64,000 nt of DNA from Blepharisma stoltei ATCC 30299 (lineage: Eukaryota; Protista; Ciliophora). Shown in pieces: positions 4,443-57,887 of this stretch. Numbering within the stretch: position 1 is the stretch's first letter; each line of letters starts with the position of its first letter. Made by a program: the position numbers and the translations under genes. Where the stretch lies: positions 310,001-374,000 of the forward strand of contig CBFDEM010000034.1 of NCBI GenBank assembly GCA_965603825.1. Reading direction: 5' to 3'. The notes below the pieces were generated by a model. It made no database searches, was not told the DNA's origin, and worked only from the letters and a program-made list of their open reading frames with translations.

Positions 4443-4516
4443 TGCTCCCAGCGAGGCTCGAACTCGCGACCTTTGGCTCATAAGACCAATGCTCTAACCA
4501 ACTGAGCTACGGGAGC
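4443..4516 (-). tRNA. tRNA-Ile(UAU), intronless
   Basis: GCTCCCGTAGCTCAGTTGGTTAGAGCATTGGTCTTATGAGCCAAAGGTCGCGAGTTCGAGCCTCGCTGGGAGCA folds into a full cloverleaf; anticodon loop CT-TAT-GA; GTTCGA T-loop; no encoded CCA. Confidence 0.95.
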
Positions 4517-12827: not shown

Positions 12828-13116
12828 AGTATTTAAAATAATTGCTTTAAAAATAAGTAGCTTAATTAATTTTACTTTTTAATTAACAATATTTCAATTT
12901 GAGGAAAATGAATTTACCGTATTATAAAATTTTTTTAATTAATTATTCAAAGGGAAAATGCAAAGTGATATAGGCATAAAATGTGGTGAAATAATATAAT
13001 ATAAAAATTTCAATTTGATAAATATTCTTTTTTATAAATCAATTGGTGAAGGCCATATAAAGAAGATATGAGTTCATAAATTATTTAATTATTATAATAA
13101 TTTGTCTCATTATTGA

Positions 13117-16100
13117 ATGATTTATGTCCTCTTTTTATTTGTTTCTGCTTCACAAGCTTTACACCTTAAAAAGAGCTTAGGAGATATCTATCTTTCTCAA
13201 AACGAAGTGCATGAGCTTGCCTTATCCGACTTCTTTGTTGGCAACAACCTAACATATCAAATTCTGTCAACAAATTCAGAAAAAGACGAAATATATTTGG
13301 AAAATAAGATGAATTTAGAATTATTATCATTTAGCCCATACCCTCCTCAACGGAATCAAAACTTAACCACCTCCCCAAGTCAAAAATCATATACAGTTTT
13401 AACTTATTTCTCCCACCAAATTTTGTGTGATTTTTATGAAAATAATATTTACCTATATAATTTCTCAGAATGCTCCAACGATTTTTCGCTTATTTGGTAT
13501 GGAGAGATAAAAACTGAATATAAATTTTCACAAATAAAAAGTGTCCTAGGTATATGTCAGAGTTTTAAAACTAAATACCTTCTTCTTATTCAATTGCAGC
13601 AGCAAGAAATAATTGATGGTAACTCAGTATGGAGAAATGATTTTTATATAATGGATTTGACCGATATTTTAAAAATTTCAGAACCCCTTTTAATAAATTT
13701 GAGCGATTTGACTTATGCAAATAATATAATCATGACTGCACCAGAGAATAGGCAAATAGTTAGTATTTATGCTGAATTTCCAGATAATAAAAACGCAATA
13801 TTATTTTATAATTTTACAAATCCTTATAATCCTATTTGCATTCAAAATATCACTCAATATTTTACTACACCCAAAGAAATTCAGACTCTATCAGTTAAAA
13901 GTATATTGGCTTCTCAAATTCATTTTTTTGTTCTCGATTCAAATATTGGCCTTATAATTTATTCATGCAGGTCTCGTAGTCAATGCATCGAAAAATCTTT
14001 TATTGATCTTCGATCTGCAGGAGATATAAAATCAATGTGATATCTGTGTGGTCCTTCTAAAAGCAATGAAGCTATTAATATTATGACTAATAAAGGAAAT
14101 ATTTTGATTGCTTTAATTGGAGATATAAAACACTGAGTCCCAGCATATAAAAATAATGGATTTGTTTATAGTCCTACTTTTGCTCAATATGTAGATAATT
14201 TTTATTTTATTCAATATGGGATATCAGACAAGTCGATTTTTAATATTTATAAAAATAGCAATTTTGAGAATGCGCTATATCAGGTTGATATAGGAAAAAT
14301 GATTGGAAAATATTATAATCAAAATGGTTCTTGGATGGTAACTCAAAGACCTATTAGTAAATTGATAGCATACTTTAGGTCTGATTTTGACGGGATAAGA
14401 GTCTTCGAATTAAAGATTAGTCCTTATTCTCTTAAAGTAAAAGGAAATTCCAATTTTAAAGCAGAAATCATTGCATATGAAAATAATAATGGAAGCTTAA
14501 ATTCAGTTTCAAGTATTATAAATGTGATTTCAATCCCTGAAAATGCAAATGAAATTTATTTATTAAATGATTATAGACCTGCTACAATTTCACCTATAAA
14601 TGTGCTTGTGGATAGACATAAATCAGAAATATTTTTATATCCAGTTAATTATTTTTCTGGGCCAAACCTAAATTTCAAAGTAACAACTCCAGATTCTAAA
14701 TTTTTTACCTTTGAGGCAAGTCAAATTGAAAAGTTAAAATATATCGATAATCAAACACTCCCTAAAGATATTGAGAAGGTTGAGATCAGTAACGACTTAG
14801 TATATTTTTTTAAAGATCACATAGATGTTAGATCTTTAATCATTAATGTTACAAATCCAATAAAAGTTTTTGAAGATGGAAGCGGGGCTATTATTTATTG
14901 AAAGACAGAAGAATTTACTCCTATGATAACATATTATAGCTATTCTCAGTTTATAATTATCCAGACATGGGAGCCAGCAGCTGAGTGCAAAATTTTTAAA
15001 AAGAAAAAGATGGTTAATCAATTGATATGCTCTGATGGAGAAATAATAGATATTTATTATGAAAATCAAGAACTTTGGGAAAGACGAATTCTGTTATCAG
15101 GAAACGATTTCGAAGGGAATTTTACATGAAATTTGAGCGATATAGAAATGTGCTCATTTGCACCAAATGAGCAGATTAATAATTATCTGTATTTAGCTGA
15201 CAAAGACAAAGGGCTCCTTGTTATCGATCTTTGGGGATTATCAAGCTTGCCATTTCCTTATTTTATTTCAGATATCTCTTTGACTGGCATTTTGAAAATG
15301 TTTTCTACCTTAGAAGATATTATTTTTATTCGAGAAAATTACTCAATAAACATTTTTGCAGGTCCATTAAGCTATAAAAGAAAAATTCAGATAGAAAATA
15401 GCGGAACTTTTACTAGAGCTGAAATATATAGGAATATAATTCTGTTGCAACTTGATGAAACATTATTTGCTATTAATATAGATGCCCCAGTGCAGAATGC
15501 CCTCTATTTTGAAAAGAAAATTAAGCCTCAAAGTTATATTTTATTAAATAGTAACTGGAGGCCTGAAAAAACTCTTGATAAGCAATTTCTACATTTATTT
15601 TATTTAAACTCAACTGAAAAATATTATGAAACTTATTTGATGCATTGTCCAGGTGAAGCACAAGATCTCTTAAACACAAAGCTTAGTAATGAGATATCAA
15701 TTCAAGTTAAAAATCCTCAAACATTAGTTAAGCAGATTTATTCTGCTGAGATTACCTTAGCTGCAGATAATAGCTTCAAACACTCAAGTATTAATTTGCC
15801 ATTGAATTTAATAGTAAATGGAGCATTTGCGTGGTTTGAGCCACATAATTGAAATATTAAACGAACAGTAAACTATGATGATCATTATGAAATTGACTTA
15901 AATAATGCATTTTTTGGTCAAAATCTGGATTTTAGCTTAAATATTAATGGGCAATACATAAATAATTCTCAATCTAGCACTTTCCCTGCCACTATTACTC
16001 AAAAAATTGAGATGATTGATTTTTATAGTTCACAGACTACTTTATTCCATCAAGCTTTAATTCCAAATACTAGCATAAGAATTTTCACATCAGCTGAAGG

Positions 16101-17412
16101 ATTTATTATTTTAAATTCCTTAGGTTTCCAAAGATCTCTTAATTTTTCAAATTACTCCTTCAATAATCTAAAATGCAGTTTAATAGACGTATTAAATTTC
16201 ACAAAAAACAATACTGCACTTCTTGCGACTTCTTGCACTTCTCAAACTAATGATTTTTCAAATACTGAAGATAGCCCATCAAAGATAAATTTATTGGTTT
16301 TATGAGAATTTGACTATATTTCTTCTTCTATGAACATATTTACTTTTTTACAAATTTCATATAATCCGTGGTATCTTAAAATAATTCCTTTAAATAAAAC
16401 AGACTTTGAAATAATGACTGTTCAGAAATATTCATATTATCAAATAACGCAGATGCTACATTTTCGTGGAAAGTGAACTGCTGATAGAATTGATATTAAG
16501 CAAATTGGATCAATTGATGCCATTTCATTGAATTTGCCTTCTTTTACCTCTATATTTTTTGATGGATTTTCTGAAAATTCAGAAAATACAGTATGGTTTA
16601 TTCTTGACAACAGCTATGGGATAAGAATTTTGAAAGCATCAAGCAAAGGCTTAGAAATCATAGATGGAATTTCTCATGACCAAACCGGCAATTATTTTTC
16701 CATTGGACTGTGTGGTGATTATTTATATGCATTAAAATTATCTAATACTTTACAGAAAATTTTGATAAAAGACTTAACCAATTTGAAAATAATAGAAACA
16801 TTCTATTATGATAATAAATACTTACCACAGCACACCCGCATATCTTGCTCAGAGGATGGAAAATATATAAGCTCTATTCACAACCTTGATGGTTCTACCC
16901 AAATCCTTAGAATTTATGACACATCTGCAAAAAGTAGCTCTTTTATTTTAGCAGATATAAAAATATGCAATTGTCGCCAATCTTTATATGTGCCAGAATA
17001 TATTTTTTTGAATTCGAATTCCATTTCAATTATTGAATGCGCTCCTGGGAGAAATGTTGCAACATTTAAAATAAATCCAAGTGTCCTAAAAATACCAAAA
17101 CTGAATTCAAGTGAATATGAAACAATTATTGATGAGTGAGGAACAAATAGTTTTGATATTTTTATTACTGCAAAAAATGATAATAATGAGGTCAATTCTT
17201 CAACAGTAAGAATTGAGAGGGGAATTGCAGAGAAATATAAAGAAAGCCAAAATAAAGAGATGTGGTTGATTTGGCTGATTGTTGCTACTGCAGTTACGCT
17301 GACAGGTGCTATGAGCTTCATTTTTATGAAAAATTTGATACTAAAAACGAAGCATAAAACTTTAGAAAATCAAGCTTTGGTTTTGATGACTATAAAAGAA
17401 AATCAGGTATAA
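13117..17412 (+). CDS. Large type-I membrane/surface protein (~1431 aa), beta-rich ectodomain
   Basis: Six ORF pieces share one frame joined by 8 TGA; signal peptide MIYVLFLFVSASQA; C-terminal TM 'MWLIWLIVATAVTLTGAMSFIFM'; recurring F-x-G-x-N-L motif; ends TAA. Confidence 0.85.
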
Positions 17413-31556: not shown

Positions 31557-34500
31557 TTATGACCCCTGAATAATAGCAGCTCCTGACCCTACAGGAATAT
31601 CTTCATAATAATGATACAACACTGATGAAGGCACTGTAGTTTTAGTAATCGATGAAGATTCCCACTGAAAATGAATATAAGAGTCTCCCTCCACATTATA
31701 ATACTTTATTTGAATTTCCACCACTTGGTTTGCTTTTAAGCTGGCCGAATATGAACTTTGTTGGTTTGTATCAATAACAACTTCATTATTAAATGAAAGC
31801 GATGCCCAATCACTAGCATTTAAATAAAAAGTATAATAAGTGTCGCTGCTAGAAACCAAAGCTCCATCCCATATCACACTTATATCGCTACTTGACCCTC
31901 AATCAAAATCAATATTTCCATCAATAACATTTTCTGAAATAGGTTCTTCAAAATCAGAATTACTATAATAAAGCCCATTTAACCCTTGCACAAGTGTATA
32001 TGCATATAATTGCAAATTTGTCTTAAAATCACATAAATAGCTTGCACTCGTTGAGGATGATCCACAGAAGCTATTTAAATCTAATTTAGACGTATCATAA
32101 ACAGCACTAGCGCTATATTGCCCTGATGATGAATCTATAGCAGTAACAGTAAATTCCAAAGGGCTAAAATTAGGGTTGTCTTCTTTATCTAAATATACAT
32201 CTCATATTGGTGAACTTGTATAAGCATTATTATAAAGGTCTTTTAAATATAAATCTACAAGAATTGTGCTGCCAGAAGTAGCTGTTGATGGAGCTGCTAA
32301 TTGAGATAGGCTCATTGATAGTAAAGCTGGAGTAATAGTTATTTGAAAGGTTTTTCCTGTATCTTCACTGTCAATTGTTGCAGAAACTGTATAGGTTCCT
32401 GTAAGATAAATAATATAATTTGCTATATAATATTCATTATGATAATTCTTTATAGATATTTGGCTTGAAGAGACAGTGCTAGTTCCAGACATAGAAATAG
32501 AGACCACATCATTAGAAGAAACTTCGAAGTTTCCATATGTGTCATAGGTAAGTATATAAATTGAGCCTTGACCTCCTGCAGTGCAGCTGCTTAAACCAAT
32601 AATTTGAGTTTTAGTAGGATCAGTGATCCCAGCTATTACTTTTATTGAAATACTCGTCACCAAACTTTCAACAGAATTTACCTGCAAATAAATAGTCATA
32701 TTATAAATTCCTGCAATTTGAGGTAAAAATGATAAGGTATAATATCCTGCTGACTGATTTTGTATAGTAACAGTCACTGTTGTTGAGTCCATAACTAAAC
32801 TTGCACTGAAAACATCAGTTGTGGTTACTTGAATATTCCCATATTTATCTCTTGCTTCAATTGTAATCATTTTTTCTATCCCTGCTTCAGCTTGATTTAT
32901 AGGCAAACTATCCCCAGAATACTGATAAATTTTGCAGCTGGATGGATCTGTGCTTGCTGGTACCAACTGGAACCCATAATTCGTCAATAATTTATAGTCA
33001 GCTTGGTAGCATTGAGAATTAATCCCATCAAAATTATAATACAAATTTTCAGCCAAAAAATCCAAAGTATCTTGCTTAGCTTGATATCATAGCAATACCA
33101 AGCTATATGCCCCACTTTGTGTTAAAAATGATAAATCAAGGTAAAATTTATTATCATTTATAGTCGCAATTTTGTCAATATTTTGTACCCCAGTGATTCT
33201 TCCATAGAAATACTGAGAAGATGTGTCGATTGAGCTTATATTTGATATAAGATTTCCATATAAATCATAAGAAGAGATATAAAGGGTAAAGCTTGCCACT
33301 GTAGACGTTGAGGAATAAGAGCTGATTGTGGCTGCTGATGCGCAGACTTGGCTGTGAATTGTGGTAAATTTTACGCTGGAGCCAGAAATTTCAGCACTAT
33401 TTAAATAGACTTTTACTGTATAAGTATCAACGGTTTTTGGGGTAAAAATCAATGAATATATCCCATTACCGTTATTTACTAAGGTAGGACTGATGGCAGC
33501 TCCAGTTAAGCCTGTAATTGTAGCTGTAAAGGTATCTGAGGAGTCTATTCTTATATTAGAATATTGGTCTTTTGAAGTAATAGTACCTGTTGTTTGGTTT
33601 CCAGCAAAAATCTGGGTAGGAATCCCTGATAGTGTTGTGGTGGATGAGCTTGAGGTTAATGCAGGCAAAATGGTAAAAGTGCTTGAAGAAGGTAACGAGG
33701 AACCGTTTATTGTTCCAGATATTGAGTAAACCCCACTTTTTGTTATTGTAAAACTAATTGTAAAAACACCTGGAGAATAGTTTATAAAAGTGGCAGTGAC
33801 TGTAGAAGCTCCTATAGCTTGAATTTGATATGAAGAAACTGAAGTAATTAAAAGATTGTTATAATACACATCCCGAGCCTGAAAATAAACTGAAAACACC
33901 GTTCCTGCATATCCTTGATATGAAGAAAATTGAATCGCAGAGTGTTCTACATTAAGGCTATTAGGCTGTACTTTCAAATTCATAGGAAAATCTTTCATTA
34001 GCCCTTGGTTTATATAAATATTTGCCTGATAATTCCCAGCCCTGAATATCTGGAAAGTGATATCAGGGTAATTATAAGTCCCAGAATAATTTTCCCCATA
34101 CACTTCAGTCCAGTTACTCGGCTGAGCAACACCAATAGAGCTTGTATAGTCATTATTATCAACAAAAGTGATTTGCAGGTCCAAAATATCATTGCTGCTT
34201 GTAATTGTATTTAAATAAGCATCTATTGCAACAAAAGTGGATATATATTTATCTCCAGCTGTAAGGGTGGATGAAATTATTGAAGAAAAATCCGTATAGG
34301 AGTTATCGATACTTATGGGGCCAGGATTTACAGTAACAGATATTGGAGAATTTTTTATTTGGCTGCCATAAAGTGTGATTTTTAAGGTATAGGTTCCAGA
34401 TGTAGTTAAAATATAGTTAGCGATAGATTTTCCATTTCCACTATACACACTTTGGAAATTCAATGTAGCTGGCCCTGAAAAGGAAACTGAGTAGACATCA

Positions 34501-36017
34501 TTTGTATTATCAAGCAAATTCCCATCTGCGTCAGCTGAATAAATCGATATCTTATTAGTAATTCCCGCATTTACTGTATTTTCAGCCTCAAAATAACAAT
34601 ACTGTGGAGAGCTAGTCCCTATCCCTATTTCTTGTAGCCAAGGTGACCCATTCACCCTTATTGGATAATAAAAAGCATTTGACGGGATCGTTTCTGAAGC
34701 TTGTGACTGGCTGCTTCACCCCAGCCAAATATTCGCTGACCCTTCAATTTGTTTAAATTCCAATTGTATATAAGTATAAACTCCTTTTGTAAATGTATAG
34801 TTTACTGATGAATTTTTTACGGCATTGCTCCAGTTGTCAATCATAAGGTCGTTATCTATATAAAGTCTGGCAAAATCGTCAGAAAATAAGTAAATAGTGT
34901 ATTCTTCGCTATAATCAGCCAATAAAAAGCCAAACCATTTAATAGTGATAAAGTTGGAGGCGTCTGGAGTGATAAGGGTACCTAATGGTCAGGACATATT
35001 GAGATAAGAGTCCTCTCTTTCCATTGTAGGGCTTTGGTAAAACCAGATATTTTGCCAATAGTCACCTAAAATTCCATATTCAGTTAGCTGTAAGACTGAC
35101 ATTGTGTAGGGGCCGGGCAAGATAGGGGTATAGCTAGCTGTCATTGTCCCGTCTGTATTGTCGCTAAATACTACATAAGCTGGTTTTTCTAATAAATCAC
35201 TAACATAATTTGGATCAGTTGAGTTCACTCTTATGCATTCATATCCATAATTAACACTACAAACATCTCTGACTTCTAATAAAAGGATTGCAGGATTTAT
35301 GACTACATTTCCACCAGAATCTAATAGATTTACAGTGACAGATAGAGAAGATTGGGAAACTGGGTTTTTTGAGACACTTATTGTGGAAACAGCTGGATCA
35401 GCTACTTGAGTTAGAAAAACAGTGATATATAAGCTCCCTGGAGAAGATCCTACTGAATTATAGCTTTGGACTATATAAATATAAGAAATTCCATATTCCA
35501 CAGTATCTGTATAGTTCGTAATTGTTGGGTCTGTGATTGATGCAATTAATTCTCATACATCACTTTTTCTGTTAATAGAATAGCCTATAATAGCTGATCC
35601 ACCGTTATCTATTCCTGCTGCATCTCATAGCAATGTGACCTGCTTAAGCTTATGTGTATAAGTTAGAGAATTCACGTCAGCAGGTGTTCCTGCACAAAGT
35701 AAAGTAACACTGGTGGAGTTTTCTGAATTTTGGCCTCCTTCTATTGCGTAGTAATAAGCTTTTAAGCTACTCCCATCATTTGTGCTGCATTTTATTTGGC
35801 CTTGAGTCTTAGATGTCATGGGCAAAAAATAAGTTTTACCTTGATAATCATACATAACTTGATACTTTGGAGATGATCCTGAATAAGCAGATCAGGTAAA
35901 CTCAATGATATTATTTGTGCGATCATATGAGCTTCAAGTTATAGGTGAAGGTGATGCTGTTTAAAAATTACAAGCTTTTGAAATACCCAAAATAGTGAAA
36001 AAGAAAAGCAAAATCAT
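31557..36017 (-). CDS. Large secreted protein (~1481 aa): signal peptide, FN3, PA14, filamin/Ig-like repeats, C-terminal PA14; one intron
   Basis: Seven ORF pieces in one frame joined by TGA; intron 35957-35971; FN3 'W…DNGGSAIIGY'; PA14 'SDDFARLYIDNDLMIDNW' and 'ASDWASLSFNNEVVID'; repeats 'ARDxYxN … GxYxxxF'. Confidence 0.87.
35957..35971 (-). other. 15-nt intron (CAG acceptor)
   Basis: GTAATTTTTAAACAG, carries an in-frame TAA just after the signal peptide. Confidence 0.85.
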
Positions 36018-44583: not shown

Positions 44584-47135
44584 ATGTCTTTACAATGTGA
44601 GCAAAAGCAATGCAAAACTATTCCGAGTTTTATATGTGCATGCTCATTGAAAGGGCATTTATTTTGTAAGGTGCATATTACTGAGCATATAGAAAGCATT
44701 CCAGGCCTTCAACATAAAGGGGTGTCCTTATTTTTTGGTAACTCTACTAAAAATATTTGCAAATTTGAGGACATCCTACCTAGAAAAGGCAGCATTTATA
44801 TCAAGATAGATGATAATATCGATCGATCTTTAAATTCTGCCATCAATTATGTTGGAATTATTATTCAATCTCTGAATGTTTACAATCGAAAATTCCCTTC
44901 AGCCTATTCACCAACTCTAGAGTCACAGAATTTATTCCCAAGTACTCAATTCCCATCCCCATCTCTTAGCCCTACTTTCCAAGATCTTTTCTATAAAATT
45001 TCTATAGTTCTCGCTACTCATATTCTTCGAATAGGAGATATTTCTTCCCTCAAAGCAAGCTATATCAATAAAATCAATTTTATAAACCAGAAAGAAATTT
45101 TAAAATACTTTAAAAGCTTAGGAACTGAAGAATTACAAGATAAACTACTTATCATTACTTTAGAGTCAAGAGAGCATAAAAGCATAAAATATGCTTCCAG
45201 TAACGCAATAACAATTTTGAATTATTCCAAATATAAATTCATTGATAAAGATTTGCATGGCATCAAAATTAAAGGCGCAGATCTCTCAGAAGCACTCATA
45301 ATAAATTCTAATTTCCAAGGAAGCAATCTTAAAAGAGTAGATTTTTCTTTCGCAAATATTTATGATACAAATTTCAAGGACTGCAATTTAACAGATGTAT
45401 GATTCGGGCAGTATCCTCCATTTAAAAATAAAATAACTGACTGGAATACCACTTTTGCCTGAAATAAGGACTACTTGGCTTCTATTGATAATAATGCTGT
45501 ATTTTTGCAAGATATTAAGACTGGGTGTGTTTTTAAAGAATTCAAACATAAAGAAATCATAAAAATAGTTGCTTTATCAGAGAACGGATCGCTGCTTGCA
45601 ATTGCTGATAAATGTAATATACTTCACATATGGGACATTATGAATGATAATAAATTAGCAGAGCTACAAGAACCAACACATTGAGTGACTTCTATTGCAT
45701 TTTCTCCGAAAGGAGGTTTAGTCGCTGCTGGAAGTCGTGATGGCTTCTTAAGAATATGAAATATTGCTACAAGTTCAATGATAAGTTCATTCACCTATTA
45801 TTCTGTTTTATTTTCAGTTGAATATTCTGCTTGTGGCAAATACATTGTTCTTGGCACTATCTCTTTAGTGCTAGTTGTATATGCTGAAGATATAAAAATA
45901 ACTAAATGCAGATTCAATCATCCTCGAACTGCAACAGTTGCCTCATTTTCTCCATGCACTAGATATGTAATAACTGATTGAATGATTTAAAATTCAGAAT
46001 GTGAGATATAGAAACAGGAGAACTTATAAAATCAATTAAAACGAGTTTTTCCTGACCTGATAGCAATTTTGGCCTCGCATTACCATATGTTTGTTTCGAA
46101 ATACAAACCATACCACTTTTGAAATGCTTAGCAAAAAATGGGCAAATAGAAATAAAGTGGTTCAATGAGGCATTATTCAATAAGCACCATTTATCATTTT
46201 CTCCTGATGGAAATTATGTAGCTACAAAGAAAAGAAAAGATTATATAGATATTTGAGATGCAAAAGCTTTAGAAAGTCATTCTTTTCCTTATAAAGAAAT
46301 TACCTCTATATCTTTTTCCTATGATGGGAAATATATGGCATATACAGATGCTTCAAAATCAATAAAAATCCAAAATATCGAAAAAAATATAAATATTGTA
46401 AAGCTTAAAGGTCACCAAGCTATAGTTTGGTATGTGATTTTTTCTAAAATATCGTATTTTTTGGTTTCTTTATATGTGGATAACATAGTGATTATCTGAG
46501 ACACTTTAAATCAATATCCTTTAAGCAAGATTGAAATTAAAGACCAAGTACGAGCTCTTGATCTATCTTTTGAAAACAATTTTATTGGGGTTGGACTATT
46601 AAATGGAAATATTAAGGTATGAAATACAAACAATCTATCAGATAGTTTTTCTTTAATGCACAAAGGAGCGATTATTTGTATAAAATTTTCACCATGTGAA
46701 AATTTTATTGCAGCTGCCAGTAAAGATGGGAAATTTATATTGTGGAGAATTAATAAAAAAAACTTTGTGAGTTTTGGTAGAAAACGCATGAAAGAGGTTT
46801 CTTACATATGTTTTGCTAAATCAAGAAATTATTTGGTTTCAGCTCATATAAATGGTGATATTATTTTTTGAGACATTAATTATCAACAGCAAGTTATGAA
46901 AGTGGAAACAAATGGAGAGATTATAAGATCAATAGCATTATCTCCATGTGAAAATTACTTGGTTGCTGGGTATTTTGATGGCTTTGTAAGAGTGCTGAGT
47001 ACTTTGCAAGGAAATATAATCAAATCGCTCCAATATCATCGTAAATCTGTTTGTTCAGTTGAATTTATAAATAGTGAAAAGCTACTATTTGCATCTGCGA
47101 GTATTGATGCTACAATTAACTTTTTGAGAATCTAA
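44584..47135 (+). pseudogene. Zn-finger/pentapeptide/WD40 gene, copy A, frameshifted
   Basis: 1-nt deletion at ~45980 (GATTG-AATGAT vs GATTGTAATGAT in copy E) gives a premature TAA at 45988-45990; downstream WD40s are in another frame. Could be an assembly error. Confidence 0.7.
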
Positions 47136-47324
47136 TATTTAAAATAAAGGATAAAATTTAACTCAATCATAACCTTTTAAAACTTTAATTTAATTTTTTT
47201 CTACTTCGTATGCCATATTGAAAATATATTAAGATGTTTCCACAAACCCCAGGAAATTATTTGAATTGTGCAATAATTAATTATCTATTAATTATAATAA
47301 TTTTTAAAAAGGATATATAATAAT

Positions 47325-49880
47325 ATGTCTTTGAAATGTGAGCAAAAGCAATGCAAAGTTATTCCAAGTTTTATATGTGCATGCTCATTGAAAGGGCATT
47401 TATTTTGTAAGGTGCATATTATTGAGCATATAGAAAGCTTTCCAGGCCTTCAGCATAAAGGGGTGTCTTTATTCTTTGATAATTCTGCTAAAAATATTTG
47501 CAAATTTGAGGACATCCGACCTAGAAAAGGCAGCATTTATATAAAGACAGATGATAATATCGATCGATCTTTAAATTCTGCCATCAATTATACTGGAATA
47601 ATTATTCAATCTCTGAATGTTTACAATCGAAAATTCCCTTTAGGCGATTCAGCAACTCTAGAGTCACAGAATTTATTGCTAAGTACTCAATTCCTATCCC
47701 CATCTCCCATAACTACTTTCCAAGACCTTTTCTATAAAATTTCTATAGTTCTCGCTACTCATATTCTTCGAATAGGAGATATTTCTTCCCTCAAAGCAAG
47801 CTATATCAATAAAATCAATTTTATAAACCAGAAAGAAATTTTAAAATACTTTAAAAGCTTAGGAACTGAAGAATTACAAGATAAACTACTTAACATTACT
47901 TTAGAGTCAAGAGAGCATAAAAGCATAAAATATGCTTCCAGTAACGCAATAACAATCTTAAATTATTCCAAATATAAATTCATTGATAAAGATTTGCATG
48001 GCATCAAAATTAAAGGCGCAGATCTCTCAGAAGCACTCATAATAAATTCTAATTTCCAAGGAAGCAATCTCAAAAGGGTGGATTTTTCTTTCGCAAATAT
48101 TTATGATACAAATTTCAAGGACTGTGATTTGGCAGGTGTGTGATTCGGGCAGTATCCTCCATTTAAAAATAGAATAACTGACTGGAATACCACTTTTGCC
48201 TGAAATAAGGACTACTTGGCTTATATTGATGATAATGTTGCATTTTTGCAAGACATTAAGAGCGGGTGTGTTTTTAAAGAATTCGAACATAAAGAAGTGA
48301 TAAAAGTAGCTGCTTTATCAAAGGACGGATCACTGCTTGCAATTGCTGATAAATGTAATATACTTCACATATGGGACATTATGAATGACAATAAATTAAC
48401 AGAGCTGCAAGGACCCTCACATTGAGTGACTTCTATTGCATTTTCTCCGAAAGGAGGTTTAGTCGCTGCTGGAAGTCGTGATGGCTTCTTAAGAATATGA
48501 AATATTGCTACAAGCTCAATGATGAGTTCATTCAGCTATTATTATGTTATATTTTCAGTTGAATATTCTGCTTGTGGCGAATATATTGTTCTTGGCACTT
48601 CTATCTCTTTAGTGCCAGTTGTATATGCTGAAGATATAAAAATAACTAAATGCAGGTTCAATCATCCACGAACTGCAACAGTTGCCTCATTTTCTCCATG
48701 CACTAGATATGTAATAACTGATTGTGATGATTTAAAATTCAGAATATGAGATATAGAAACAGGAGACCTTATAAAATCAATTAAAACGAGTTTTTCCTGA
48801 CCTAATAGCCTTTTTAGCCTCGCATTACCATATGTAGGTTTCGAATTACGAACCATACCACTTTTGAAATGTTTAGCAAAAAATGGGCAAGTAGAAATAA
48901 AGTGGTTCAATGAGGCATTATTCAATAAGCACTATTTATCATTTTCTCCCGATGGAAATTATGTAACTACAAAGAAAAGAAAAAATTATATAGAGATTTG
49001 AGACGCAAAAGCTTTAGAAAATCATTCTTTTCCTTATAAAGAAATTACCTCTATATCTTTTTCCTATGATGGGAAATATATGGCATATACAGATGCTTCA
49101 AAATCAATAAAAATCCAAAATATCGAAAAAAATATAAATATTGTAAAGCTTAAAGGCCACCAAGCTATAGTTTGGTATGTGATTTTTTCTAAAGTATCGT
49201 ATATTTTGGTTTCTTTATATGTGGATAACATAGTGATTATCTGAGACACTTTAAATCAATATCCTTTAAGCGAAATTGAAATTAAAGATCAAGTGACAGC
49301 TCTTGATCTATCTTTTGAAAACAATTTTATTGGGGTTGGGCTATTAAATGGAAATATTAAGGTAATAAATACAAACAATCTATCAGATAGTTTTTCTTTA
49401 ATGCACAAAGGAGTGATTACTTGTATCAAATTTTCTCCATGTGAAAATTTTATTGCAGCCGCCAGTAATGATAGAAAATTTAATTTGTGGAGAATTAATA
49501 AAAAAAACTATGTGAGTTTTGGCAGAAAACGCATGAAGGAGGTTTCTTACATATGTTTTGCTAAATCAAGAAATTATTTGGTTTCAGCTCATATAAATGG
49601 TGATATCATTTTTTGAGATATTAATACTCAACAGCAAGTTATGAAAGTGGAAACAAAAGGAGGGATTATAAGATCAATAGCATTATCTCCATGTGAAAAT
49701 TACTTGGTTGCTGGGTTTTTTGATGGCTTTGTAAGAGTGCTGGGCACTTTGCAAGGAAATATAATCAAATCGCTCCTATATCATCGTAAATCTGTTTGTT
49801 CAGTTGAATTTATAAATAGTGAAAAGCTACTATTTGCATCTGCGAGTATTGATGCTACAATTAACTTTTGGAGAATCTAA
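47325..49880 (+). CDS. Zn-finger/pentapeptide-repeat/WD40 protein, copy B (851 aa)
   Basis: Single frame with TGA=Trp (WD/WN repeat ends); SSNAITILNY anchor, pentapeptide repeats, about 13 WD40 blades; ends TAA. Confidence 0.9.
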
Positions 49881-49982
49881 TATTTAAAATAAAGGATAAA
49901 ATTTAACTCAATCATAACCTTTTAAAACTTAATTTAATTTTTTTCTACTTCGTAATAATTTTTAAAAAGGATATATAATAAT

Positions 49983-52532
49983 ATGTCTTTACAATGTGAG
50001 CAAAAACAATGCAAAGTTATTCCAAGTTTTATATGTGCATGTTCATTGAAAGGGCATTTATTTTGTAAGGTGCATATTATTGAGCATATAGAAAGCATAC
50101 CAGGCCTTCTACATAAAGGGGTGTCATTAATCTTTGATAATTCTGCTCAAAATATTTACAAATTTGAGGACATCCGACCTAGAAAAGGCAGCATTTATAT
50201 AAAGACAGATGATAATATCGATCGATCTTTAAATTCTGCCATGAGCTATGCTGGAATAATTATTCAATCTCTGAATGTTTACAATCGAAAATTCCCTTTA
50301 GGCGATTCAGCAACTCTAGAGTCACAGAATTTATTGCTAAGTACTCAATTCCTATCCCCATCTCCCATAACTACTTTCCAAGACCTTTTCTATAAAATTT
50401 CTATAGTTCTCGCTACTCATATTCTTCGAATAGGAGATATTTCTTCCCTCAAAGCAAGCTATATCAATAAAATCAATTTTATAAACCAGAAAGAAATTTT
50501 AAAATGCTTTAAAGTCTTAGCAACTGAAGAATTGCAAGACAAACTACTTAACATTACTTTACAGTCAAGAGAGCATAAAAGCCTAAAACATGCTTCCAGT
50601 AACGCAATAACAATCTTGAATTATTCCAAATATAAATTCATCGATAAAGATTTGCATGGCATCAAAATTAAAGGCGCAGATCTCTCAGAAGCACTCATAA
50701 TAAATTCTAATTTTCAGGGAAGCAATCTTAAAAGGGTGGATTTTTCTTTCGCAAATATTTATGATACAAATTTCAAGGACTGTGATTTAACAGATGTATG
50801 TTTCGGGTTGCATCATCCATTTAAAATAAGTGACTCGAATATCACTTTTGCCTGAAATAAGGACTACTTGGCTTATATTGATAATAATGTTGCACTTTTG
50901 CAAGATATTAAGACTGGGTGTGTTTTTAAAGAATTCAAACATAAAGAAGTGATAATAGTAATCGCTTTATCAGTGGACGGATCGCTGCTTGCAACTGCTG
51001 ATAACTGTAATATACTTCACATATGGGACATTATGAATGACAATAAATTAACAGAGCTACAAGGACCAAAACATGGTGTGAATTCTATTGCATTTTCTCC
51101 GAAAGGAGGTTTTGTCGCTGCTGGAAGTCGTGATGGCTTCTTAAGAATATGAAATATTGCTACAAGTTCAATGATAAGCCCATTCGGCTATTATTCTATT
51201 ATATTTTCAGTTGAATATTCTGCTTGTGGCAAATATATTGTTTTTAGCACTGGTATGCTTTCCGTGCTAGTTTTATATGCTGAAGATATAAAAATAACTA
51301 AATGCAGATTCAATCATCCACGATATGCAACAGTTGCCTCATTTTCTCCATGTACTAGATATGTAATAACTGATTGTGATGATTTAAAAATCAGAATATG
51401 AGATATAGAAACAGGAGACCTTATAAAATCAATTAAAGCGAGATTTTCCTGATTTAATAGCCTTTTTAGCATCGCATTTAAATATTTAGGTGTAGAAACA
51501 CGAACCATACCTCTTTTGAAATCTTTAGCAAAAAATGGGCAAATAGAAATAAATTGGTTCAATGAGGCATTATTCAATAAGCAATATTTATCATTTTCTC
51601 CTGATGGAAATTATGTAGCTACAAAGAAAAGAAAAAATTATATAGAGATTTGAGATGCAAAAGCTTTAGAAAGTCATTCTTTTCCTTATAAAGAAATTAC
51701 CTCTATATCTTTTTCCTATGATGGGAAATATATGGCATATACAGATGATTCAAAATCAATAAAAATCCAAAATATCGAAAAAAATAAAAATATTTTTAGG
51801 CTTAAAGGCCACCAAGCTATAGTTTGGTATGTGATTTTTTCTAAAATATCGTATTTTTTGGTTTCTTTATATGTGGATAACATCGTGATTATCTGAGACG
51901 CTTTAAATCAATATCCTTTAAGCGAGATTGAAATTAAAGACCAAGTGACAGCTCTTGATCTATCTCCTGAAAACAATTTTATTGGGGTTGGGCTATTAAA
52001 TGGAAATATTAAGGTAATAAATACAAACAATCTATCAGATAGTTTTTCTTTAATGCACAAAGGAGGGATTACTTGTATAAAATTTTCACCATGTGAAAAT
52101 TTTATTGCAGTTGCCAGTTACGATAGGAAATTTAATTTGTGGAGAATTAATAAAAAAAACTTTGTGAGTTTTGGTAGAAAACGCATGAAGGGGGTTTCTT
52201 ACATATGTTTTGCTAAATTAAGAAATTATTTGGTTTCAGCTCATATAAATGGCGATATCATTTTTTGAGATATTAATACTCAACAGCAAGTTATGAAATT
52301 AGAAACAAAAGGAGGGATTATAAGATCAATAGCATTATCTCCATGTGAAAATTACTTGGTTGCTGGGTATTTTGATGGCTTTGTAAGAGTGCTGAGTACT
52401 TTGCAAGGAAATATAATCAAATCGCTCCAATATCATCGTAAATCTGTTTGTTCAGTTGAATTTGTAAATAGCAAAAAGCTACTATTTGCTTCTGCGAGTA
52501 TTGATGCTACAATTAACTTTTGGAGAATCTAG
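49983..52532 (+). CDS. Zn-finger/pentapeptide-repeat/WD40 protein, copy C (849 aa)
   Basis: All ORF pieces in one frame joined by TGA; ends TAG. Confidence 0.9.
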
Positions 52533-52614
52533 TAATTAAAACAAGGATAAAATTGAACTTAATCATAACCTTTTAAAATTCAGTTTAATTTTTTTCTACT
52601 TCGTATATAATAAT

Positions 52615-55170
52615 ATGTCTTTACAATGTGAGCAAAAACAATGCAAAGTTATTCCGAGTTTTATATGTGCATGCTCATTGAAAGGGCATTTATTTTGTAA
52701 GGTGCATATTATTGAGCATATAGAAAGCACTCCAGGCCTTCTACATAAAGGGGTGTCCTTATTCTTTGATAATTCTGCTCAAAATATTTGCAAATTTGAA
52801 GACATTCTACCTATAAAATGTAGCATTTATATAAAGACAGATGATAATATCGATCGATCTTTAAATTCTGCCATGAGCTATGCTGGAATTATTATTCAAT
52901 CTCTGAATGTTCACAATCGAAAATTCCCTTTAGGCGATTCAGCAACTCTAGAGTCACAGAATTTATTGCTAAGTACTCAATTCCTATCCCCATCTCCCAT
53001 AACTACTTTCCAAGACCTTTTCTATAAAATTTCTATAGTTCTCGCTACTCATATTCTTCGAATAGGAGATATTTCTTCTCTCAAAGCAAGCTATATCAAT
53101 AAAATCAATTTTATAAACCAGAAAGAAATTTTAAAATGTTTTAAAAGCTTAGCAACTAAAAAATTACAAGCCAAATTGCTTATCATTACTTTACAGTCAA
53201 GAAAGCATAAAAGCCTAAAATATGCTTCCAGTAACGCAATAACAATCTTAAATTATTCCAAATATAAATTCATCGATAAAGACTTGCATGGCATCAAAAT
53301 TAAAGGCGCAGATCTCTCAGAAGCACTCATAATAAATTCAAATTTCCAGGGAAGCAATCTCAAAAGGGTGGATTTTTATTTCGCAAATATTTATGATACA
53401 AATTTCAAGGATTGTGATTTGACAGATGTGCGATTCGGTAAGTATCCTCCTTTTAAAAATAGAATAGCTGACTGGAATGCCACTTTTTCCTGAAATAAGG
53501 ACTACTTGGCTTATATTTATAGTAATGTTGTATTTTTGCAAGATATTAAGAGTGGGTGTGTTTTTAAAGAATTCGAACATAAAGAAATTATAAAATTAGT
53601 CGCTTTATCAGAGGATGGATCACTGCTTGCAATTGCTGACACCTCTTATATACTTCACATATGGGACATTGTGCATGATAAAAAATTAACAGAACTGCCA
53701 GGACTCTTACATTTAGTGACTTCTATTGCATTTTCTCCGAAAGGAGGTTTTGTCGCTGCTGGAAGTCGTGATGGCTACTTAAGAATATGAAATATTGCTA
53801 CAAGCTCAATGATAAGTTGTTTCAACTATAATTCTAATATACTTTCAGTTGAATATTCTGCTTGTGGCAAATATATTGTTCTTGGCGCTCCTATCTATTT
53901 AGTGCCAGTTGTGTATGCTGAAAATATAAAAATAACTAAATGCAGTTTCAATCATCCACGAACTGTAACAGTTGCCTCATTTTCTCCATGCTCAAGATAT
54001 ATAATAACTGATTGCGATGATTTAAATATCAGAATATGAGCAATGGAAACAGGAGAACTTATGAAGTCAATAAAAATGAGTGTTTCCAGACCAAATAACC
54101 TTTTTGACTTATCATTTTCAGATGTAGGTATAGAAATACAAACCATGCCTCTTTTGAAATGCTTAGCAAAAAATTGGCAAATAGAAATAAAATGATTTAA
54201 TGAGACATTATTCAATAAGACATCATTATCATTTTCTCCTGATGGAAATTACGTAGCTATAAAGAAAACACAAAATGATGCAGAGATTTGAGATGCCAAA
54301 GCTTTAGAAAGCCATATCCTCCCTTATAAAGAAATTACTTCTATATCTTTGTCATATGATGGGAAATATATGGCATATACAGATGCTTCAAAATCAATAA
54401 AAATCCAAAATATCGAAAAAAATATAAATATTTTTAAGCTTAAAGGCCACCAAGCTAGGGTTATGCATGTGCTTTTTTCTAAAATATCGTATTTTTTGGT
54501 TTCTTTATGTGTGGATAGCATAGTGATTATCTGAGACACTTTAAATCAATATCCTTTAGGCAAGATTGAAATTAAAGATCAAGTGTCAGCTCTTGATCTA
54601 TCTTTTGAAAACAATTTTATTGGGGTTGGGCTATTAAATGGAAATGTTAAGGTAATAAATACCAAAATCATATCGGATAGTTTTTCTTTAACACACAATG
54701 GAGCGATTACTTGTATCAAATTTTCTCCATGTGAGAAATTTATTGCTGTCGTACGCAATGATGGCAAATTGATTTTGTGGAGAATTAATAAAAACATCTT
54801 CGTAAGTTTTGGTAATAAAAGAATGAAGGAGGTTTCTTGCATATGTTTTGCTCAATTAAGAAATTATTTGGTTTCAGCTCATATAAATGGTGATATCATT
54901 TTTTGAGATATTAATAATCAACAACAAGCTATGAAAGTGGAAACATATGGACGGGTTATAAGATCAATAGCATTATCTCCATGTGAAAATTACTTGGTTG
55001 CTGGGTATTATGATGGCTTTGTAAGAGTGCTGAGTACTTTGCAAGGAAAGATAATCAAATCGCTCCAATATCATCGTAAATCTGTTTGTTCAGTTGAATT
55101 TATAAATAGTGAAAAGCTACTATTTGCATCTGCGAGTATTGATGCTACAATTAACTTTTGGAGAATCTAA
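52615..55170 (+). CDS. Zn-finger/pentapeptide-repeat/WD40 protein, copy D (851 aa)
   Basis: All ORF pieces in one frame joined by TGA; ends TAA. Confidence 0.9.
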
Positions 55171-55337
55171 TATTTAAAATAAAGGATAAAAATAAACTCA
55201 ATCATAACCTTTAAAACTTTTTTCGGCTTCGTATGCCATATTGAAAATAAGATGCTTTTATAAATCGAAAATTATTTGAAATTGTGCAAAAACTAATTAT
55301 CTATTAATCATAATTTTTAAATAAGATATATAATAAT

Positions 55338-57887
55338 ATGCCTTTACAATGTGAGCAAACACAGTGTAAAATTATTCCAAGTTTTATATGTGCATGCTCA
55401 TCGAAAGGAGATTTATTTTGTAAGGTGCATATTATTGAGCATATAGAAAGCATTCCAGACCTTCAACATAAAGGGGTTTCTTTATTCTTTGATAATTCTG
55501 CTAAAAATATTTACAAATTTGAGGATATCCTACCTATAAAAGGCAGCGTTTATTTAAAAATAGATGATAATATCGATCGATCTTTAAATTCTGCCATGAG
55601 CTATGCTGGAATTATTATTCAATCTCTGAATGTTCACAATCGAAAATTCCCTTTAGGCGATTCAGCAGCTCTAGAGTCACAGAATTTATTGCCAAGCACT
55701 CAATTCCCATCTCCTATCCCTACTTTCCAAGACCTTTCCTATAAAATTTCTATAGTTCTCGCTACTCATATTCTTCGAATAGTAGATATTTCTTTCCTCA
55801 AAGCAAGCTATATCAATAAAATCAATTTTATAAACCAGAAAGAAATTTTAAAATGCTTTAAAAGCTTAGCAACTGAAAAATTGCAAGCCAAACTGTTTAG
55901 CATAACTTTACAGTCAAGAGAGCATAAAAGCCTAAAACATGCTTCCAGTAACGCAATAACAATCTTGAATTATTCCAAATATAAATTCATCGATAAAGAC
56001 TTGCATGGCATCAAAATTAAAGGCGCAGATCTCTCAGAAGCACTCATAATAAATTCTAATTTCCAGGGAAGCAATCTCAAAAGGGTGGATTTTACTTTCG
56101 CAAATATTTATGATACAAATTTCAAGGACTGTGATTTAACAGATGTGCGATTCGGTAAGTATCCTCCATTTAAAAATATAATAACTGACTGGAATACCAC
56201 TTTTGCCTGAAATAAGGACTACTTGGCTTATATTGATAATAATTTTGCATTTTTACAAGATATTAAGAGTGGGTGTGTTTTTAAAGAATTCGAACATAAA
56301 GAAATTATAAAATTAGTCGCTTTATCAGAGGATGGATCACTGCTTGCAATTGCTGACACCTCTTATATACTTCACATATGGGACATTGTGCATGATAAAA
56401 AATTAACAGAACTGCCAGGACTCTTACATTTAGTGACTTCTATTGCATTTTCTCCAAAAGGGGGTTTTGTTGCTGCTGGAAGTCATGATTGCTGCTTAAG
56501 AATATGAAATATTGCTACAAGCTCAATGATGAGTTGTTACGACAATTATTATGCTATAGCTTCAGTTGAATATTCTGCTTGTGGCAAATTTATTGTTTTA
56601 GGCAGTTTTAGCATTTTAGTGCCAGTTTTGTATGTTGAAAATATAAATTGATTTAAATGCAAGTTATTTCATCCTCAATCTGCAACAGTTGCCTCATTTT
56701 CTCCATGCTCAAGATATGTAATAACTGATTGTAATGATTTAAATATCAGAATATGAAAAATAGAAACAGAAGAACTTATGAAGTCAATAAAAGTGAGTAT
56801 TTCAAGACCTAATAACCTTTTTAACTTATCATTTTCAAATATAGGTATAAAAATACAAACCATGCCTCTTTTGAAATGCTTAGCAAAAAATTGGCAAATA
56901 GAAATAAAATGGTTCAATGAGACATTATTCAATAAGCAATGATTATCATTTTCGCCTGATGAAAATTGCATAGCTATAAAGAAAACAAAAAATTATACAG
57001 AGATTTGAGATGCCAAAGCTTCAGAAAGCCATCTCCTCCCTTATAAAGAAATTACTTCTATATCTTTGTCCTATGACAGGAAATATATGGCATATACAGA
57101 TGCTTCAAAATCAATAAAAATCCAAAATATCGAAAAAAATATTAATGTTTTTAAGCTTAAAGGCCACCAAGCTATAGTTATGCATGTGATTTTTTCTAAA
57201 ATATCGTATTTTTTGGTTTCTTTATATGTGGATAACATAGTAATTATCTGAGACACTATAAATCAATATCCTTTAAGCGAAATTGAAATTAAAGACCAAG
57301 TATCAGCGCTTGATCTATCTTTTGAAAACAATTTTATTGGGGCTGGGCTATTAAATGGAAATATTAAGGTAATAAATACAAAAAATCTATTAGATAGCTT
57401 TTATTTAAAGCACAAAGGAGCGATTACTTGTATTAAATTTTCTCCATGCGAGAAATTTATTGCATTCGCCAGTAGTGATAGGAAATTGAATTTGTGGAGA
57501 ATTAATAAAAAAAAATTCGTAATTTTTGATAAAAAATGCATAAGGGAGGTTTCTTATATATGTTTTGCTAAATCAAGAAATTATTTAGTTTCAGCTCATA
57601 TAAATGGTGATATCATTTTTTGAAATATTAATAATCAACAACAAGTTATGAAAGTGGAAACAAATGGAGGGATTATAATATCAATGACGTTATCTCCATG
57701 TGAAAATTATTTGGTTGCTGGGTATTATGATGGCTTTGTAAGAGTATTGGGTACTTTGCAAGGAAAGATAATCAAATCGCTCCAATATCATCATAGATCT
57801 GTAAGTTCAGTTGAATTTATAAATATTGAAAAGCTACTAATTGGATCTGCAGGTCTTGATGCTACAATTAACTTTTGGATAATCTAA
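55338..57887 (+). CDS. Zn-finger/pentapeptide-repeat/WD40 protein, copy E (849 aa)
   Basis: Pieces share one frame; the larger gaps between ORF-track pieces translated by hand contain only TGA; ends TAA. Confidence 0.9.

Follow-up and report, generated by a model that had tools for sequence, protein, structure and literature searches.

A tandem array of NACHT-less pentapeptide-WD40 genes in Blepharisma stoltei: candidate recognition proteins with one diversifying propeller

Can the sensor half of a NOD-like receptor (NLR)-type protein be maintained, and go on diversifying, in genes that carry no nucleotide switch? The question is raised by a stretch of 64,000 nt from the ciliate Blepharisma stoltei ATCC 30299 (contig CBFDEM010000034.1, positions 310,001-374,000; this full stretch is "the window", and array positions are window coordinates), in which positions 44584-57887 hold five head-to-tail paralogs on the + strand, in continuous frames for which no spliced model is needed. 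An earlier note, made from the sequence by itself, had described them as NLR-like genes without a NACHT domain and with hypervariable WD40 loops. The architecture proved to be NACHT-less, the module made of its helical, pentapeptide and WD40 parts aligns as a homologue of what follows NACHT in other proteins, and the part ahead of the WD40 repeats (the N-module) is under purifying selection. Amino-acid replacement is concentrated on one face of the first of two predicted WD40 propellers.

The array and its protein

Frames were read with TGA as tryptophan and with TAA and TAG as stops, which gave the following copies:

44584..47135, + strand: copy A, frame broken
47325..49880, + strand: copy B, intact, 851 aa
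49983..52532, + strand: copy C, intact, 849 aa
52615..55170, + strand: copy D, intact, 851 aa
55338..57887, + strand: copy E, intact, 849 aa, identical to deposited protein P0018

The copies share 87-94% DNA identity with their short spacers included (82-189 nt between units, 82-413 nt upstream of each copy). Read with the standard code, the array shows only short open reading frames (ORFs); reading through TGA yields five ORFs of ~850 codons and raises the coding density of the window from 48% to 79%. Because TGA occupies the tryptophan position of the WD40 "WD" dipeptide, and interchanges there with TGG at equivalent positions, we read it as tryptophan. The macronuclear genome of B. stoltei ATCC 30299, of 41 Mb in 64 telomere-to-telomere sequences and with 66% AT, uses UGA for this amino acid (PMC9942806).

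In copy A a single nucleotide is missing between 45980 and 45981, at a site that is not part of a homopolymer, and the resulting frameshift leads to a TAA stop at 45988-45990, five codons past the deletion. A contig from run X8 covers 45812-46058 with 0 differences, no run carries an insertion at the deletion site, the deposited product of copy A (P0153) has only 468 aa, and the downstream part (45963-47135) remains open in the shifted frame; the break therefore appears to be both real and recent. Five tandem genes had been claimed, and five copies are indeed present at these positions on the + strand, but only four of them are intact. A deposited product of 849 aa, P0152, was matched to copy C by length alone. 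In the A-B spacer (window 47208-47278), one DNA contig from run X1 skips 69 nt, maybe as a spacer length variant, and similar deletions occur in spacers C and D. A 17-nt unit present twice in the finger-coding part of copies B (47388-47423), C (50046-50081) and D (52678-52713) is probably trivial.

Architecture was read from AlphaFold 2 models of the array protein, with an overall predicted local distance difference test score (pLDDT) of 75. Residue numbers are those of copy E, and ω denotes the ratio of nonsynonymous to synonymous rates (dN/dS):

55338..55481, + strand, residues 1-48: predicted B-box-like zinc finger, ligand pattern C5, C10, C18, C20, C28, H31, H35, H44
55719..55976, + strand, residues 128-213: helical domain with SYxNKINF and SNAITILN motifs, pLDDT 85-95, ω 0.28
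55977..56162, + strand, residues 214-275: pentapeptide-repeat beta-helix, Pfam PF00805 and PDB pentapeptide matches, ω 0.19
56202..56942, + strand, residues 289-535: WD40 propeller 1, six confident blades and a degenerate blade (486-535), the hypervariable part
within propeller 1: top-face D-A/B-C loops, which include residues 360-365, 403-406 and 424-426
56943..57884, + strand, residues 536-849: WD40 propeller 2, seven blades, mostly under purifying selection

Pfam, applied to gene pieces and to P0018, recognized Pentapeptide at residues 232-271 (E 1e-9) and WD40 across 290-849, and returned zero matches at E<=1 for residues 1-215, the same 215 residues having no sequence match in Pfam, PDB sequences or the Atlas. 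Behind the finger, residues 51-127 are modelled at low confidence as a disordered linker with one 23-residue helix (76-98), followed by a confident five-helix domain of ~85 aa (130-212) ending in SNAITILN and by three coils of pentapeptide beta-helix (216-275, pLDDT ~90-97). The pentapeptide segment has PDB profile matches at E 5e-27 and shows the right-handed quadrilateral beta-helix of A(D/N)LXX repeats that marks the PF00805 family; Foldseek with the N-module returned pentapeptide proteins only. The expected ~13 WD40 blades were recovered as 13 confident four-stranded blades plus a degenerate fourteenth (486-535, low-confidence model, "IEIKWFN" C-strand motif), so that the modelled WD40 part reads as two 7-bladed propellers, and its double-propeller fold matches Aip1, Pwp2, Gemin5 and Apaf-1 (3sfz). 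As had also been noticed, the pentapeptide repeat is almost invariant among the copies. Its synonymous divergence (window 45232-45417 and equivalents, codons 216-275) is dS 0.09-0.47, which in most copy pairs lies above the gene-wide 0.09-0.20.

Selection along the protein

Site models of the GY94 type, in code written by ourselves, were fitted to the five paralogs on the whole-gene tree ((A,B),C,(D,E)). Whole-gene pairwise dN/dS was 0.44-0.75 (NG86) and the single-ratio model M0 gave ω 0.52, whilst comparison of M1a with M2a and of M7 with M8, the latter proposed as a check by the earlier note, each gave twice the log-likelihood difference as 16.9 (p 2e-4) with ~10% of codons at ω ~3.2. Thirteen sites had a posterior >0.8 and none >0.95. 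Conflicting site patterns (AC, AE, BC and CE) show some gene conversion or recombination, and for this reason three segments were refitted, each on its own best topology of 15. The N-module was constrained (M0 ω 0.34; M1a vs M2a p 0.83), propeller 1 carried the signal of positive selection (M0 ω 0.89; p 5e-5; 16% of codons at ω 4.6) and propeller 2 was not significant (M0 ω 0.42; p 0.19). Values by part were 0.37 for the finger, 0.28 for the helical domain and 0.19 for the pentapeptide repeat, and the intact genes are therefore maintained by selection.

In WD40 proteins, the D-A and B-C loops form the top face of the propeller. With strands A-D assigned from the predicted model and the top face set by strand order, variable columns made up 47/94 of the top loops and 30/110 of the bottom loops (Fisher p 0.0014), and the top loops evolved at ω 0.98 compared with 0.46 for the rest of both propellers (likelihood-ratio statistic 26, p 3e-7). 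Within propeller 1, ω was 1.58 for the top loops (p 0.009 vs ω=1), 0.40 for the bottom loops and 0.65 for the strands. Local rates for the same top loops (NG86) were dN 0.255 and dS 0.116, i.e. dN/dS ~2.2, and the bottom loops stayed at 0.35-0.40 across methods. Replacements on the D-A/B-C loops of propeller 1 have thus accumulated faster than expected under neutrality, and in the two closest outside paralog pairs (C1 and C54) dN is likewise highest on these loops. Every variable string that had been quoted from the five copies was reproduced in our alignment, and the concentration of substitutions in short WD40 loops was upheld by the column counts; the prediction of dN/dS above 1 at variable sites held for the top loops of propeller 1, but not for propeller 2, home to two of the five example patches, where the test was not significant.

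Blades within one protein are on average 21% identical (maximum 36%), and no blade-length tandem DNA repeat is present. Diversification has therefore proceeded by duplication of paralogs, substitution and short conversion tracts, rather than by shuffling of repeat units.

Relatives with and without NACHT

A profile of the helical and pentapeptide part (A1), built from 19 paralogs, was searched against 1.84 billion representatives. Besides the B. stoltei family, it picked up a small number of long outsiders (P0075, P0103, P0143 and P0156), in a search so swamped by long multi-repeat pentapeptide proteins that the NACHT-bearing relatives named here are not a total. P0075, of 802 aa, comes from an AT-rich, eukaryote-like contig in which TGA is a stop, and has NACHT at 50-191 with the P-loop GNSGCGKS. 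Residues 98-297 of copy E align with its residues 311-509 at 29% identity (BLASTP, E 2e-27), and the helical domain of the array is homologous to the segment of P0075 between its NACHT and its pentapeptide repeat. P0103 reads TIR-NACHT-pentapeptide-WD40, P0143, from a bacterial-looking contig, has two NACHT-pentapeptide units with WD40 after the second only, and P0156 reads NACHT-pentapeptide-WD40, with a NACHT match of 25.1 bits that falls just under the Pfam cutoff of 26.7 bits. By these alignments, the helical, pentapeptide and WD40 module of the array is homologous to what follows NACHT in NACHT-pentapeptide-WD40 proteins of the STAND class (signal transduction ATPases with numerous domains), as had been proposed with reference to fungi, ciliates and endosymbiotic bacteria. 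Of the stretch between NACHT and pentapeptide in these relatives, the array, as aligned, keeps only the last ~100 residues before the pentapeptide helix.

Two of the outsiders have further features of their own. P0103, an immune-type relative of the module encoded on a Logan contig (2631 aa), contains another helical and pentapeptide unit at 1810-1922 and then more WD40. P0143 (L022:4001-8833) lies on a contig of 47% GC next to phage holin, lysozyme and tail-assembly genes, in the very fragmented assembly GCA_016307145.1.

No P-loop is visible in the translations of the five copies, and no G....GK[ST] motif occurs in about 30 B. stoltei paralogs. The genome yields 11 Pfam NACHT matches, all at places away from the array, and no NACHT-containing member turned up among those ~30 family members, so the reported absence of Walker A and NACHT was sustained. 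A hidden upstream NACHT exon is ruled out by the genome-wide NACHT scan and because the 82-413 nt spacers are too short to hold one. The NACHT genes that B. stoltei does have encode about 1,385-1,705 aa (e.g. L023:2778-7895, - strand, and L025:3810-7967, - strand), and some of their proteins have two Walker A motifs (e.g. at residues 478 and 1443), suggesting tandem nucleoside triphosphatase (NTPase) modules.

In the B. stoltei genome as a whole we counted at least 58 matches to the module and 48 to Pentapeptide. The family numbers several dozen genes, a setting that the earlier note had missed, and the array is a single one of its loci. Every family ORF examined has a short variable N-terminus and then helical, pentapeptide and WD40 parts, with a total length of 730-980 aa; the finger is carried by a subset only. 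Family paralogs are letter-for-letter identical to deposited B. stoltei proteins (e.g. CAG9330094.1), which confirms the ciliate origin suspected from the sequence, and these entries bear automatic names only ("unnamed", "uncharacterized" or a domain-derived label). A literature search found no paper linking Blepharisma to these domains.

What stands in place of NACHT is a small cysteine/histidine finger, in which seven of the eight ligand positions are invariant across eight paralogs and the remaining one, C10, is kept in 7/8. The finger model matches B-box folds in COL2 (7vsp, Z 5.2), TRIM28 B-box1 (6o5k, Z 4.5, 42 aligned residues of a 43-residue chain, 1.8 A) and the CYLD B-box insert (2vhf, Z 4.3), with no sequence-level match in Pfam (zf-B_box included) or PDB. 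Because fold matches come without sequence-level support, we call the finger B-box-like with moderate confidence. The genome contains at least 55 matches to it. At two of them, C12:22250-23119 and C18:183698-184780, Kelch repeats follow 0.6-0.8 kb downstream on the same strand, a link that is a coincidence of coordinates at two places only. Several types of propeller protein thus seem to start with this finger, and since it precedes Kelch repeats at these two other places, a modular design of finger plus propeller, recalling TRIM-type adaptors, is suggested. Sample SRR24908292, from an AT-rich eukaryote with the standard code, contains the NACHT-bearing P0075 together with P0091, a finger-headed member without NACHT, so that the replacement of NACHT by a finger seems to extend beyond B. 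stoltei.

The genes adjoining the array encode a C2H2 zinc-finger protein and a bifunctional DHFR-TS (dihydrofolate reductase-thymidylate synthase). A bacterial origin under code 4 (mollicute), considered in view of TGA as a sense codon, is rejected on the strength of a genome of 41.5 Mb in 64 contigs, of these two genes and of the paralogs equal to named B. stoltei proteins. The only RNA gene found in the window is a tRNA-Ile with anticodon TAT (4443-4516, - strand), and elsewhere in the window there are two ORFs of ~1,470 codons each with TGA as tryptophan (13000-17412, + strand, and 31557-35960, - strand).

Weighing the explanations and comparison with known systems

The explanation that we favour as a whole, at somewhat better than even probability, is that the array is a recent tandem expansion within a Blepharisma-expanded family built from an NLR-like sensor half, and that this family is diversifying propeller 1. 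Under this explanation, the family would be the sensor half of a NACHT-pentapeptide-WD40 STAND protein (helical domain, short pentapeptide beta-helix, two 7-bladed propellers) from which the NTPase, the helical-1 domain and the winged helix have gone, with a B-box-like finger, one helix and a disordered linker in their stead. The top face of propeller 1 would bind a fast-changing partner, either foreign or a fast-evolving self protein, held out on a fixed stalk made of the rigid pentapeptide helix and the conserved helical domain. Without a nucleotide switch, output would pass through assembly or recruitment by the zinc-finger/helix module, and recognition would depend on avidity, as in B-box proteins such as TRIM5alpha, rather than on the nucleotide-driven oligomerisation of NLRs. 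Tandem duplication, point substitution and gene conversion over short tracts would supply new specificities, in place of the shuffling of near-identical repeats, and copy A would be a recent casualty of such a birth-and-death process.

Several points weigh against this explanation. The tests of positive selection come from our own GY94 code and from only five recombining paralogs, with no site reaching a posterior of 0.95, and gene conversion is known to inflate such tests. The "top face" is predicted, being derived from strand order in a model and not from coordinates, and the model has low confidence in the most variable stretch (486-535), which may be just a decaying blade. Two more distant paralog pairs show no enrichment on the top loops of propeller 1. 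The predicted B-box fold rests on Z scores of 4.3-5.2 for a 45-residue domain without sequence support. Expression data are Logan contigs only: in two runs that are guessed to be RNA, contigs of low depth fall on coding sequence of copies A, B and C and none on the three spacer bins, the DNA runs cover the array spacers, and this placement is suggestive of transcription of the array, and compatible with it, short of proof.

The most serious alternative is an ordinary lineage-specific family of WD40 scaffolds, drifting after duplication under relaxed constraint, with loops the parts most tolerant of change and with an apparent ω above 1 that gene conversion, the small number of sequences and small site classes would have produced. 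The whole-gene ω of 0.44-0.75, the lack of any site posterior above 0.95, the conflicting AC, AE, BC and CE patterns, the broken copy A and the two distant pairs without a top-loop excess would all fit it. Against it, the bottom loops, which are exposed to the same degree, sit at ω 0.35-0.40 as compared with 1.6-2.2 for the top loops of propeller 1; the signal moreover persists under segment-specific topologies, local dS in those top loops is not depressed, and an N-module ω of 0.2-0.4 marks genes that are maintained. We regard this alternative as unlikely, though it keeps real weight.

Less probable again is a role of the proteins as substrate receptors in ubiquitination or another modification pathway, in which the propellers pick substrates (as in DCAF and F-box-WD40 proteins), the finger docks an E3 or E2 (ubiquitin ligase or ubiquitin-conjugating enzyme) and the family tracks its substrates. 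The B-box-like fold would suit such a role, as would the finger ahead of Kelch propellers (C12:22250/22985 and C18:183698/184670), interchangeable propellers being typical of adaptor superfamilies. Yet no RING, F-box, BTB, SOCS or DDB1-binding motif was detected, and the nearest relatives of the module bear NACHT or TIR-NACHT, not ligase parts.

The earlier note had also offered a decoy reading, here taken to mean that the proteins pair, as decoys or regulators, with NACHT-pentapeptide-WD40 receptors of full length in the same cell. The coexistence of NACHT-bearing P0075 and finger-bearing P0091 in SRR24908292 speaks for such pairing, but the eight NACHT loci of B. stoltei that were examined, which account for 9/11 NACHT matches, contain no helical and pentapeptide module (hmmsearch E<=10) and all ~30 family members are without a P-loop. 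As the NACHT genes of B. stoltei itself are without the module, we consider decoys very improbable. That the whole array is decaying pseudogenes is scarcely credible, for although copy A is frameshifted, its downstream part is still open, implying a recent break, copies B-E retain frames of 849-851 codons, and ω is 0.19-0.37 on the finger, helical and pentapeptide parts.

Returning to the expanded, NLR-derived sensor family, a broader and considerably more doubtful extension is that heterotrich ciliates may run an NTPase-free form of innate recognition, in which dozens of B-box-headed pentapeptide-WD40 sensors would detect foreign or non-self proteins with propeller 1, by its fast-evolving top face, and would signal through self-assembly driven by the zinc finger, with the array as a specificity-generating locus. 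By analogy, this may amount to TRIM5-like logic assembled from NLR parts. Immunity, endosymbiont sensing and allorecognition, which the earlier note had suggested, are candidate roles. To our knowledge, almost nothing is known of self/non-self discrimination in ciliates or of how they sense intracellular invaders. If the favoured explanation is true, an NLR-type sensor half can persist and diversify after its nucleotide switch has been exchanged for a small zinc module, and Blepharisma gains an experimentally tractable candidate family in four intact genes, nearly identical to one another, whose differences lie mainly on a single face of a propeller. The array would also be a test case for diversifying WD40 sensors, which apparently need no repeat shuffling here.

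The closest known likeness is to the uncharacterised NACHT-pentapeptide-WD40 STAND proteins (P0075, P0103, P0143 and P0156), which have the same alignable order of a helical SNA(I/L)T(I/L)L domain, a short pentapeptide beta-helix and WD40; the array differs in being without the NACHT NTPase and the ~150 residues that follow it, and starts instead with the predicted B-box-like finger and disordered linker. Fungal HET-E, HET-D and NWD allorecognition proteins have a WD40 sensor whose top-face propeller loops are the focus of positive selection, and they form multigene families subject to birth and death. The array resembles them in its WD40 sensor, in top-loop positive selection (on propeller 1) and in apparent multigene birth and death; the likeness drawn at the outset thus holds for selection on the top-face loops of propeller 1, but not for the shuffling of near-identical repeats, nor does the array have HET or NACHT, and it adds two 7-bladed propellers and a pentapeptide stalk. 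TRIM and other B-box proteins such as TRIM5alpha share with it an N-terminal B-box-type zinc fold (here predicted), a diversifying C-terminal recognition domain and tandem clusters, NTPase-free recognition being a proposed analogy; unlike TRIM5alpha, the array protein has no RING in Pfam scans, one low-confidence 23-residue helix (76-98) in place of a long coiled coil, WD40 rather than SPRY and no similarity to Pfam zf-B_box. Like Apaf-1, it is STAND-related with a tandem pair of WD40 propellers, and 3sfz is among its fold matches, whereas Apaf-1 has CARD and NB-ARC, propellers of 7+8 blades and a conserved single-copy gene.

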